Below are positions 43,932 to 49,442 of a stretch of 64,000 nucleotides of DNA, in pieces. The translations under genes and the position numbers were made by a program. Below the pieces are notes generated by a model, which saw nothing but the letters and a program-made list of their open reading frames with translations, did not search any database and was not told the DNA's origin. Every line of letters begins with the position of its first letter. Within the stretch, counting starts at the first letter, position 1. This DNA is from Amoeboaphelidium protococcarum X5 (taxonomy: Eukaryota > Fungi > Aphelidiomycota). Location of the stretch: positions 1,036,604 to 1,100,603 of the forward strand of contig JALDTO010000146.1 of assembly GCA_023515725.1 (NCBI GenBank). The letters are read 5' to 3'.

Positions 43932-44327
43932 AATGGTGATATGATATGAAACACTATAATATAGCAAGATTTTAAAAAGGTGATTCCTTGCGTGTTAAAG
44001 TGAATCTAAGGTTGCTTTGTGCTCTTTTAAGCCTTTCGCCATCTCTCTCCTCCTTTCTCTTTCTCATAATTGCCAATGATTTGATTATTTTAAACTCACA
44101 GACCTGTTCCTATTCAATAGTTGAGGACAACGAGTTAAATGAGGCAATTTGTATAATTTTATTTCATTTACCTTTTCAAGTAATCATTTTTAATTTAAAA
44201 TCGAGCCTGTATTGGGCACTTGACGCGCTCATAGAGTGGTCCAACACCTTGAATCGTAGACGCGTTTGTTTAGTTTTGCGATTGCGTTTCTCTGCGGCCT
44301 CACTGTTTCACCTTCATTCAAACGTCC

Positions 44328-44368
44328 TACGGAATCCGAGAGCCGCAAAAGCGCGTCGCTATTTAAAA
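44328..44368 (+). repeat. Left terminal inverted repeat
   Basis: tacggaatccgagagccgcaaaagcgcgtcgctatttaaaa; core repeated as gttcgagagccgcaa at 44414-44428. Confidence 0.8.
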
Positions 44369-45117
44369 AGCAGAAACGAATATTTGTTTCTTACAACTGT
44401 TTTTGTTTTTAATGTTCGAGAGCCGCAATCAGTGCCTCACATTAATACATAACGTTTTTGCACTTGTAATACGCGAATGCGACTTAACAAATTGATTAAT
44501 TTTTGTGATTACTTTCTTATTTATATCATGCTGCAAAATCAAATGTATTAGTCATGCACCGTGTGTGTGTTGCTTTACTTTAATGTGCAACTTGCGCAAC
44601 TGCAGCAGTATTGGTGTAAATATCTCAAGATTTTTAATATAGCAGTATTTGCTCCGCTTCTCTAGTAAAGAAATATATGCACCAAACCTCAAGCAAAAAT
44701 TTGCAAACTGTTTGTGAGTAGTGGTTGCTCGATCTTTGTCACAACTGATTGCTTGATGCGTTAATCTCGAAACTGGCGCTTGCAATTTAACAGTAAGTAA
44801 GCGATTATTTGTGATAAATTGTTTTGATACTGAATGATACTTTATTATCTCTTACACACTATTCACTAAACTACTTTTTAACAACGTACAATCTTATTTG
44901 CGAGATAAGCATACAGGTATAAGCAATGCAGCATTGGGACGCCGTAGTGTTGTCATTACTTGCTGCGCCACCCCCCTTACGCCACTCTAAGATCTTACGC
45001 AATCATATTATTAATAACAGCTCTCATAGTTCAGATAACTAAAACGCGACAAATATACGCAATCTCTTTAGTTGATATCTATATCCTAGTGTCTTTTGAA
45101 TAGAATCAGTATCAAGC

Positions 45118-47133
45118 ATGTTTAATCCGTTGTAAGATGTGTTATGTCCCAATTCGTCCGGACTCAAAAGGGAGGACTGTCATTGTGCTGGATGTAAATC
45201 TTGGCAATAGGCGCAAGCCTAGTTGATGCATTCACAAATGCAATTTGAGTAAAAGAAAAAGCTTGCGGTGCAGACAAGAACCGAGTCAATGGTAAATAGA
45301 TTGCACAGTGGATACCAGACTAAGCCGCCGCCCCCTGTTCATAGAAACGGTCCTGGTAGTGGAAATAGAGGTTTGACGCGTAAAAACGCGCTGGTGCAAA
45401 TTAGCATTGTCCCTTGTATTTCAGGATCAAAGGTTGGATAATTTAAGCGTCTGGAAAATGTTGGCCCATAGATGATTTAGATTGACAAGTATAATGACAA
45501 TTATCAATCTGTCTTAGCATAAGCTTGTGCATTGTTTCACTATCAAGTTGAGCAATCGTCAATTGGACAAAGTCAAATCCACCAAATCCCCTAATTTGGA
45601 GTTGATTTTGACGTAATATAATGGACCCAGAATATTCAATTGGCAGGATGTAAGTATACCTCTAATAAGGATAAGGTGCTATATTTGATTCCGTTGGTTG
45701 AAAGCAATCGCGTGTAATTGCATCCTAGTTTAAAGAGAAACTATGAGTCTCTACAGTAGCTGAATTTTTTGAATGTCGAGGACTTTGATTACTAGTATGG
45801 TTTGCCAGATGAGAAGATGCAGGATAAGGATGATTTTGAAATTGTTGAACCGACGCGTACTTTAGATGAGCCTATTATTCAACCTGTCAAGCCTGTCAAA
45901 AAGATCAAATCTGCGCAGGAGTCTACGATCATACCTGTCAGTTCAAATGTTGCGAGAAATAGTTAGATTGAACATAAGAATAAGTTTTGCTAGTTTGAAA
46001 ACATTTCCAAGGTGTCCCCTCAGCGTGTAATAAAAAATACGCGCTCCTTGTAAGGCAGTGTGGTTGTGCATGTCTACGACTATGAAACAGGCTCCTGGTT
46101 CACTGAGGATCCAGGAGTAGTTGGAATGCCAGATCTGGCAGGAAAGACTAACAAAGGGAATATAAAAAGATGCTACTATAATGGATCTCTGGTCAAGTTT
46201 TTTCCAGATCTGCCAGTAGTCTTTAAGTGCGCAATTGATAAGGATGACGATGATTATGGATTACATGCTAGGGAAATATTAAACTCTGTTTGCGCTCAAA
46301 GGTGCTTCCTAGATTTTGACGCGGAATTGATTAAGACGCTGCTGGGTTAAGAATATCTATAGGTTGCTGGTGAGTAGCGTGGAGTTTGTGCTGGCGTGAT
46401 GCTGGAGATTAGAGACAAATAAAATGAGGAATTTGGTGATATGGTGGATCTAGCAAAGATATGGACAGTTGAACCCTTCGTAGATGGCCAATTTGTGAAG
46501 TATATCGACAACGAGCATTTTATGCAAATTTGTGATGATGATCAGACTTATGAGGAGAACTTTCGTGAAGAAGTGGCCTGGGCTTTTGCCCATTACTCCT
46601 ATTATTGGTTTGAGAAGGAGAACTACGAGTAAATGATAGTTGATATTCAAGGCTCTAAGTGTCACTTTACAGATCTTTAGGTGTGCACTGTCAATGGCAC
46701 CGATTGCAGTATTGGCAATATGGGTTTACCAGCAATTGTGAAGTTCTTCGTTATGCACTAGTGCAATTAGATTTGCAAGGCTTTGCATTTAGATGTCGCG
46801 ACCATTCCGTCTTTAGTAATGGAGAAGATTATGGAAGATTCTCTCTTAATGGATAAATTCGAGTCCACTGTGTTTGGATCTCCAGCATAGGCCGCTCCTA
46901 ATCCTCTTGGATAGTAGAAGACATCATTGAAGTCGGATGTCTCCATAACTTCTGTGTCTAAACAGGTAGAAGTTAATAATCAAGCCACTCAGGATTTGCA
47001 GATAGTAAAGGAGAAATCTAAGATTAAGTTGGTGGATCCTATTGTTAAAAACATACGTCCGTCTAGCAGAAGACCTAATACGCGTGCTAAAAATGCTGCG
47101 TAGAAGAAATTGCCAACTTTGACTGAGGATTGA
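45118..47133 (+). CDS. Alpha-kinase (eEF2K/MHCK family), transposon-borne
   Basis: 671 aa; WTVEPFVDGQFVKYIDN, AFAHYSY, MIVDIQG..FTDLQV, GNMG..AIVKFF.MHQCNQIC..L. Confidence 0.9.
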
Positions 47134-47218
47134 GTATTTAGTAGCTCTGGTGGAGTTAACAATGAGTACGTAAAGATAGTAATAGCAATAAGAAATTTTT
47201 AATTATTCAGACCATTCT

Positions 47219-48598
47219 TCACTAAGCAATTTCCTACCCTCTCACTTACTATTCTGCTATCAACAATTAATCTCTAAATGCATCCAGCGCGCTTACGAGA
47301 TCGCCATCGGACACTAAAGCCTTGAACACATCTTGACAATTGTCAAAGGTAAGTTGATCAAAACCTTTCTCTATAACAACTTCATCAATAAGATGCCTAG
47401 CGTAATTAATTCTAAACCTATCATTCATATCTATAGTACTTGGTCCAAACAATTGAATAGCCATATCACGCATGTCTTGAGGAGGCTCCAAACCACATTC
47501 TACTCCATCAAACATCTCGGGAACTTGATAACGCATGATGGGCTGTCCTTGATTTCGAATCTTATGGTAATTCCACAAGGTGGTAATTTTATCTAAACAC
47601 TCAGCGATATAATGTCCAAAACAATACTGAGAAATTGTCTTATGAGAATAAAGCGTGGTATTAAAATAACCTGCAAAGTGAAGATTGTTCAGCGTTCCTA
47701 TCCAATATTCAAGCCCATAATGATTCTATCTGCCCCAGTAACTTTCTATACGCGTATTGAAATTGGATGAACCCACAATATAAGAGTTCTCACCTACCAA
47801 TATTTCTTGCAATTACTTGATGTAATTGTTCTCAGTTCCGCCATCAACACGAACTTTTCCAGGCATAACATTGCATTTGTCAGCCGCATCCAGAAAATAT
47901 TCCAGTATGTAACGCGCGGGCCTATTCGTATCTGCGACCATACTAAACACAACATACCTACTAAAACCATCTACACACGCACTTATTCCAAAGCCAAACT
48001 ACGACAGCTTATCGAAGCCATCTATATGCCACACTTAATTAGGACCATCATTTTAATATTCACGGCGTTTCAACTTGCGCCTTTTACGCATTTACACAGC
48101 CTCTGGATTGTCGAATCTTTAGCAAACCATAACCATGTCTCGAGATACTTATTGGCCTGATAGTTCACGAAGGACTTATGTAGTTGATCTAATTCCCAAT
48201 CTTTCACCTTCATCCTGATTTACAACATGCACTAAATCCAAAACTTCGACAGGAGATAGCGCACAATGTCTCGTTCCAATTTAATGCTGCGACAAAATCG
48301 ATTGCAAAGTCCTTAAGGACATTTAAATATTATGCTTCTATTTCAGCCAATCCAATAATTATTGTTAAGTGGACCCGCCATTAATTAGATGGCGAGCTTC
48401 TTCAATCCAATGTTCACTTTAATCCGCAAATGTGGCTCTATTTAAAGCAGTACTCAATCCATGTTCAGTCATAAACCGGTCCAATTTGGACTTGGAGCAG
48501 ATTGTTCCACTAGAATTTAGAGTATCTAAAATTTCCTTGCGCTTCAAACCTTAATTTACTAACTGCCGTACCTGTTCCAAGTCGATTTCTTAAGACAT
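47219..48598 (-). CDS. DDE transposase (integrase core, IS3EU type) with N-terminal HTH-like repeats
   Basis: 459 aa; RREYQNDGPNQVWHIDGFDKL, VDGFSR, KVRVDGGTEN, GSSNFNTRIESYW, WNYHKIR. Confidence 0.9.
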
Positions 48599-48772
48599 TT
48601 TGCTGCAAAAAATGAATTCGAGTTAAGATGTCCCCTATTATAAGGCGGATATAGTGCATGATAAGAAACAAAATAGCAATGAATTTATTTTTAAAATTAC
48701 AAAACAAAATAAAAATTAAAAATCATTTAAAATATTAATGGGAACTTTCATTTTACTTTCTATGTTTAGTAA

Positions 48773-48813
48773 TTTTAAACTGCGAGGCGGTTTTGCGTTT
48801 CTCGAACTCCGTA
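48773..48813 (-). repeat. Right terminal inverted repeat
   Basis: Reverse complement reads tacggagttcgagaaacgcaaaaccgcctcgcagtttaaaa. Confidence 0.8.
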
Positions 48814-48868
48814 AACGTCTGAATCTACAGTACCAAATTCTTATAGCGTTGTATATCACTTTTAAATA

Positions 48869-49442
48869 ATGAGTTTAAATTCGCTTTCTAGCTTCGTATC
48901 CGATGAGGTATTCCTTCTAAATTCATAGGCATATATCAAAGTTTACATAACCGATGTGTAGGAGGCTGTTCCATTCTTCGATGCTATTAACTCTGGTGAT
49001 TCCACCACAGTTCGTAAAATGCTGAGCGAGGACAAGTCATTGACTTTGGCAAAACGTCGTTCTGAGAAGTTTAAATACGATAGTGATGTTGAATTAGAGG
49101 CTTTTAAATTTCTAGGTGCTTATATCGGAGCTGTAACTGGTCTATAGCTGGCCTTGTTGATCGGTAGAGATGATATCGCAAAGGATATAATTGATGATAC
49201 ATTGGAGGCTAGCGATTTTGATGTCACTTATGGAGGAGGCAATACTGCTCTTCATTTGGCGGTGTTTTTGAACGCTAATGAAGTTGTGAAAGCCCTTATT
49301 GATCGTGGTTGTAACACACATTTGAAGGTAATCTCATCGTAATGTGTTCTGGGTTCACTTTATTCTAATTGTGTAGAACAGCAAAGGTTACTCTGCTTTG
49401 GATATCGCTGATACTTAGGAAATGAGACTGTTGTTTGAATGA
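48869..49442 (+). CDS. Small ankyrin-repeat protein; introns 48908-48961 (probable) and 49328-49376
   Basis: TGLQLALL, GGNTALHLAVFLNANEVVKALIDRG, NSKGYSALDIA. Confidence 0.85.

Follow-up and report, generated by a model that had tools for sequence, protein, structure and literature searches.

A 64,000-nucleotide stretch of the Amoeboaphelidium protococcarum X5 contig JALDTO010000146.1 (positions 1,036,604 to 1,100,603; the window) carries an IS3EU/GingerRoot-type DNA transposon at window positions 44328-48813, in which an integrase-like DDE transposase gene is paired with an alpha-kinase gene. We consider it highly probable that this is a young autonomous transposon carrying a selected accessory kinase that acts inside the cell. 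Both genes travel together in one fixed 4,486-bp mobile unit, which starts with TACGG and ends with CCGTA. Co-mobility of the two genes had been proposed in an earlier note made from the letters of the window, and is borne out by 17 full-length copies with different target-site duplications (TSDs) as well as by the gene pair on contigs of two other samples.

Anatomy of the element and its transposase

The TACGG..CCGTA termini and an identical boundary were found in every copy of the element. Its terminal 41 bp form terminal inverted repeats (TIRs) with 33/41 matching positions. Their local alignment score of 59 exceeds the shuffle maximum of 45, and a binomial estimate that allows for the 200x200 search is about 2e-8, so the match is not due to chance. 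Alignment, shuffles and binomial estimate thereby agree with the coordinates, ends and repeats given in the earlier note, which had regarded insignificant TIR similarity as an argument against the element. The subterminal repeat that it had placed at 44414-44428 is also present, reproduces 12 bp of the left TIR core exactly and is a probable extra transposase-binding site. The TSD at the window locus is imperfect, consisting of AACGTC, with the left copy longer by one C, or, alternatively, of 7 bp with one mismatch; a duplication of 6-7 bp had been noted, of which the existence stands, while the rule for the family is 6 bp. Source-strain contigs confirmed the flanks of this copy with zero differences.

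Both open reading frames (ORFs) of the element are uninterrupted only if TAA and TAG (TAR) are read as glutamine (Gln), which we take to be the code of A. protococcarum, and break into fragments under the standard code. Across the whole window, ORFs of at least 120 amino acids (aa) numbered 5 under table 1 vs 110 under table 6. TAR accounts for about half of the Gln codons in both element genes, as in host genes. In this code only, the two convergent frames of 459 and 671 aa noted before were recovered, with 85 bp between their stop codons and no TET/JBP gene in this gap. The transposase measures 459 aa from MSQEID and 510 aa from an upstream Met. The features are as follows.

44321..44327, plus strand: left TSD, AACGTC with one extra C (contig check; single copy in the empty allele)
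44328..44368, plus strand: left TIR with the TACGG end, 33/41 to the right TIR (shuffles and binomial; same boundary in all copies)
44414..44428, plus strand: subterminal direct copy of the TIR core (12-bp exact repeat)
45118..47133, plus strand: 671-aa alpha-kinase gene in the TAR=Gln code (ORF reading and PF02816 match)
46429..46776, plus strand: PF02816 match, C-lobe (VEPF, YIDN, H492, D509-I-Q511-G, T-D519, GNMG, H547/C549/C553)
47219..48598, minus strand: 459-aa integrase-like DDE transposase gene (D193, D252, E285, spaced D-58-D-32-E; KRRKLKRR basic cluster before the core)
48690..48779, unstranded: right subterminal AT-rich inverted repeat (arms 48690-48706 and 48763-48779; overlaps the inner end of the right TIR)
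48773..48813, minus strand: right TIR with the CCGTA end (pairing with the left TIR; boundary common to copies)
48814..48819, plus strand: right TSD, AACGTC (flank reading, empty allele)

The transposase matched PF24764 (rva_4) at 98 bits in a profile search with a cut-off of 26, and its catalytic triad D193/D252/E285, reported as intact before, is present. Eukaryotic rva_4 proteins made up the closest Atlas clusters to its C-terminal piece, and an N-terminal HHCC motif was not seen by eye in the translation. Together, the TA..TA termini, the 6-bp TSD, the TIRs of more than 30 bp and the integrase-like DDE transposase without HHCC support, by structure, the IS3EU/GingerRoot assignment proposed earlier. 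Homolog searches with both proteins used stop-free pieces only, as queries without in-frame TAA/TAG. Three such searches as well as an Atlas search with the kinase piece were blank or returned only the element itself, phmmer with a 69-aa kinase piece against 1.8 billion representatives gave no distant homolog, a PDB search with kinase pieces gave a putative protein kinase (4kuj, E=0.41) as its best match, and scans of metagenome and viral contigs for related loci were likewise blank or self-only, all of these being short queries that are uninformative on absence. The TIR pattern of rust IS3EU matched nothing in metagenomes, which is equally uninformative on absence.

A third conserved ORF in the 790-bp 5' region was rejected, as no consistent frame emerged in comparison with the relics described below. 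This non-coding region has a 75% match at L029:1501-1613 (C264), beside an unrelated ORF rich in Gly/Arg; this may be a further relic or a different element that shares a regulatory stretch. The TIR core GAGCCGC (within 44328-44368) appeared similar by eye to a repeated subterminal motif of rust IS3EU-1/-4 (PMC12730594 supplement). An ankyrin-repeat-like gene (window 48869-49411) starts 55 bp past the element end, which probably places the element in the promoter or 5' untranslated region of that gene.

Copies, empty sites and differences between strains

The assembly (23.6 Mb, 346 contigs) contains 17 copies of full length and one that is interrupted, besides several element ends at contig breaks, and the copy number in the source strain is about 17-21. 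The 17 full-length copies differ at one single-nucleotide polymorphism. With swapped and split copies re-paired, 15/19 insertion sites have a perfect 6-bp TSD, the sequence of which is different at each. The genome-wide check suggested in the earlier note therefore yielded further copies at distinct targets, and the lack of other linked copies that it had weighed as a counter-argument was not observed. Insertion targets are GC-rich (57% vs 40%, P=0.002). Insertions in long open frames are rarer (42%) than among random positions (78%), the background being the window only.

Contigs of a second strain (both haplotypes) and of a biofilm metagenome join the flanks of the window copy with a single target copy. 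This is the empty allele that the earlier note had looked to other strains for, and the site in the second strain is empty rather than occupied by a kinase gene without transposase or TIRs. No homeologous empty site was found within the source assembly. As a rough guide, contig depth over the element was about 16-17x that of the flank in the source run, and in other samples, with the same caution, about one haplotype's depth or about 2x the flank. The near-identical copies, the empty sites and the depth together indicate a burst that is recent and strain-specific. In two independent samples the kinase C-lobe and the transposase lie on the same contig, and in one of these samples the right flank is new.

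The two assemblies of A. protococcarum have proteins that are about 92% identical (PMC10608142). Between strains the element diverges by 0.2-0.4% vs about 7% for the flanks at the window locus, which suggests, for this one locus, that it recently passed between diverged lineages by hybridisation or horizontal transfer. The kinase of the 17-copy variant has Leu408 and Arg483, while three other samples have Pro408 and Cys483; the transposase protein of this variant is identical to that in SRR845265. The two kinase substitutions may reflect hitchhiking with a founder copy.

Several copies showed further peculiarities. Two inverted copies (L006 and L007, C142:18577-366393) carry swapped TSDs, CTGGCT and CGCGTC. 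With their flanks re-paired, the duplications become perfect and frames of 784 and 450 codons are open, which indicates that the 339 kb between them is inverted, either by ectopic recombination or by misassembly. At another locus (L018/L019, C146:611538-615575) the kinase gene of one copy is split by an element of 4 kb that shows a 9-bp duplication and GG..CC ends, lacks clear TIRs and contains a long ORF. This nested element looks Mutator-like by eye and, sitting inside a copy, is as young as the burst or younger. On the left flank of L016, where the TSD is imperfect, the target CCGGTC lies 15 bp further left and is followed by filler ending in TACG-CCCGTA; the filler resembles both element ends collapsed and is possibly an excision or repair scar. 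Past the N break beside a truncated copy (L021:2606-3922), an ORF with the Walker A sequence GTGKS resembles a D5-like primase-helicase and may derive from a viral or Polinton-like element. Near another partial copy (L020:1-1027), an ORF resembles by eye the C-terminal part of a KDZ/Zisupton-type transposase.

The alpha-kinase and its relics

The kinase scores 81 bits on PF02816 (curated cut-off 21.3), with zero matches in 14 control genomes. The profile aligns over positions 89-185 only, and the N-lobe is divergent. An N-terminal region (aa 1-310) is followed by the kinase domain (about aa 330-556) and a low-complexity tail with a basic patch. With the N-lobe mapped manually, the catalytic Lys K370, the hinge Glu E452, D509/Q511, D519, G533-N-M-G and the zinc site H492/H547/C549/C553 are all present, in agreement with the intact catalytic and zinc-site motifs reported earlier. 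In these motifs and in exceeding the profile cut-off the protein is like PF02816 alpha-kinases of the eEF2K, MHCK, TRPM7 and ALPK1 type. In contrast to the usual members, it has a divergent N-lobe, TDL in place of TDP and, by manual alignment, Lys at the usual P-loop Arg position. Its Lys, hinge Glu, DxQG, TD, GNxG and zinc-site motifs align, by hand in the N-lobe, with the sole host-type alpha-kinase found, at C98, which is 27% identical over 113 aa. In this host-type sequence (L030:1486-2043, 157 bits), DLQG is followed by an in-frame TGA and TDP is replaced by TDR; it is either a gene with an intron or a decaying gene.

Comparison with broken relics showed that the kinase core is maintained by strong purifying selection. 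Against the old relic at C212, the C-lobe (aa 481-560) has a synonymous divergence (dS) of 0.70 and a nonsynonymous divergence (dN) of 0.04 (dN/dS 0.06), the tail has a dN/dS of 0.33, and the C-lobe motif residues are unchanged in the relic. Against a second relic, at C233, aa 285-375 have a dN/dS of 0.26. Neither a signal peptide nor a transmembrane segment is present in the kinase, the maximal 19-residue hydropathy at its N-terminus being -0.13, and because the C233 relic conserves the start region, a missed leader is unlikely.

Each of the relics examined is broken, and they are dispersed; one adjoins a copia-like fragment that looks like reverse transcriptase. The C233 relic (L023:1787-2430, about 513.8-514.4 kb) consists of the kinase N-terminus (aa 1-62, 40% identical), a decayed Myb/telobox-looking stretch and the kinase N-lobe. 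The Myb-looking stretch, called by eye, replaces aa 63-284 and matches C214 at 76% over part of its length; this relic is possibly a domain-swapped sister family. In the element itself, a strand-helix pattern seen by eye at window 45380-45720 (kinase aa ~90-200) suggests a ubiquitin-like beta-grasp domain.

Known relatives and the role of the kinase

Kojima 2025 described IS3EU families from 7 rust species and one family from Tuber indicum, with 6-bp TSDs, TIRs of more than 30 bp and TAYGG..CCRTA ends (PMC12730594). The genes for their transposase and their alpha-kinase lie in opposite orientation and are separated by a TET/JBP gene (PMC12730594, section 4.1). The pairing is therefore not the undescribed system that the earlier note had supposed. 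The gene pair is so far mentioned only in passing in that one paper, which assigns the kinase no function, and the literature searched contained neither a report on the function of an IS3EU-borne alpha-kinase nor a functional report of a transposon regulating itself via its own protein kinase. The present element is like these TET-bearing families of Pucciniales and Tuber indicum in its ends, TIR length, 6-bp TSD and opposed gene pair, and opens with the same seven bases, TACGGAA, as IS3EU-2_PGr of rusts. Unlike them, it has an 85-bp gap instead of TET/JBP, is intron-free as read, uses the TAR=Gln code and resides in a host outside Dikarya; without a TET gene it is not a TET-bearing family. 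Its genes are convergent, while PMC12730594 says 'opposite' without stating convergent or divergent. New here are the TET-less two-gene version, the aphelid host, the strain-specific burst and the low element divergence between diverged strains.

IS3EU/GingerRoot elements in general share the TA..TA termini, the 6-bp and sometimes longer TSD, the GC-rich targets and the integrase-like DDE transposase (PMC10045372, PMC6839031), and elements with two proteins are mentioned in a passage quoted in PMC8232023. GingerRoot TIRs span 100-150 bp vs 41 bp in the present element, and the word 'kinase' occurs in neither PMC10045372 nor PMC6839031. Styx/REP9 of Zymoseptoria (PMC10853768, PMC8232023) is similar in its IS3EU-related transposase, 6-bp TSD, recent strain-level bursts and association with rearrangements. 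On the other hand, it has 4 ORFs with GATA/CCHC/DUF accessory genes and no reported alpha-kinase (PMC10853768), which indicates that transposition across the superfamily does not depend on a kinase.

By analogy with the family, the DDE transposase would bind the TIRs and the subterminal repeat and excise the element, insertion would proceed by a 6-bp staggered strand transfer, and copies would be gained via gap repair after cut-and-paste. The kinase, being selected, not secreted and absent among the Styx ORFs, is best understood as an accessory factor that is optional and would act inside the host cell to the benefit of the element and outside the cutting chemistry. As its target class we tentatively favor host chromatin or the silencing machinery over the element's own transposase, because fungal relatives captured TET/JBP, a presumed anti-silencing gene (PMC12730594), beside the kinase and because one relic shows the Myb-looking stretch. 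We regard as doubtful the broader proposal that the kinase has long been the dedicated partner of one IS3EU lineage, since before the aphelid/Dikarya split, that it phosphorylates chromatin or silencing proteins or the transposase and so switches transposition, and that the two strain-private substitutions aided the burst.

Some observations weigh against a young element with a selected accessory kinase. Contig depth is not copy number, and the assembly may have homogenised copies. The Myb-looking stretch had no match in a Pfam search. The relics at C212, C233, C162 and C214 are kinase-only, those at C212 and C233, used for dN/dS, having no transposase within their 1.5-kb flanks, and no diverged transposase relic was found; part of the selection could therefore predate residence of the kinase in the element. 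These same relics, along with the lack of a homolog link to fungal element kinases (obtained with short stop-free queries), fit a recent Pack-type capture from a host alpha-kinase gene, independent of the fungal IS3EU kinases; the kinase would then be a passenger, conserved because of a role it once had in the host. We find such a capture unlikely, given that the relics are broken and dispersed with one abutting the copia-like fragment, that the host-type kinase is so distant, that Pucciniales and Tuber have the same gene pair in the same orientation, and that the 2-kb kinase frame is intact in other populations where covered. Still less likely is an effect on general host physiology or an addiction or drive factor favoring carriers. 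Translation via eEF2 and the cytoskeleton are classic substrates of alpha-kinases, and the strong constraint on the core would suit such a role, but the 790-bp 5' region without a conserved ORF offers no partner antidote gene, and copy numbers of 1-2 and of about 17 occur in different strains.

A self-encoded switch, in which phosphorylation of the element's transposase by its own kinase raises or lowers transposition, ranks above these as a possible alternative. Transposases are regulated by host kinases: phosphorylation of Mos1 by PKA blocks nuclear import and the assembly of paired-end complexes (PMC3902898), and piggyBac is reported to be inhibited by N-terminal phosphorylation (10.1101/2022.09.26.509586). 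The opposite-orientation pair recurs in fungi, and the 17-copy variant differs at kinase residues 408 and 483 while sharing its transposase protein with SRR845265. Against such a switch, related elements transpose without a kinase, and the substitutions may have hitchhiked. Delivery of the kinase as a secreted effector to the algal host, spread by the transposon, would suit an aphelid that is an intracellular parasitoid of algae (PMC10608142). It is very improbable for a protein without signal peptide or transmembrane segment, which also makes the spread of kinase effectors proposed in the earlier note unlikely.

The element, to which we ascribe an optional intracellular kinase, also shapes its genome, since long reading frames of the host are broken by several copies and the apparent 339-kb inversion lies between two inverted copies. 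As a compact test case it combines just two genes, without a TET gene or introns as read, with copies that are fresh and empty sites that are known. Further assets are the strong selection on the kinase core and the low-copy variants of other populations, which differ at two kinase residues. Its value lies in providing a minimal, recently active model for a kinase whose role is unaddressed in the literature searched, and with an aphelid host the pairing of transposase and alpha-kinase reaches the sister group of Fungi.

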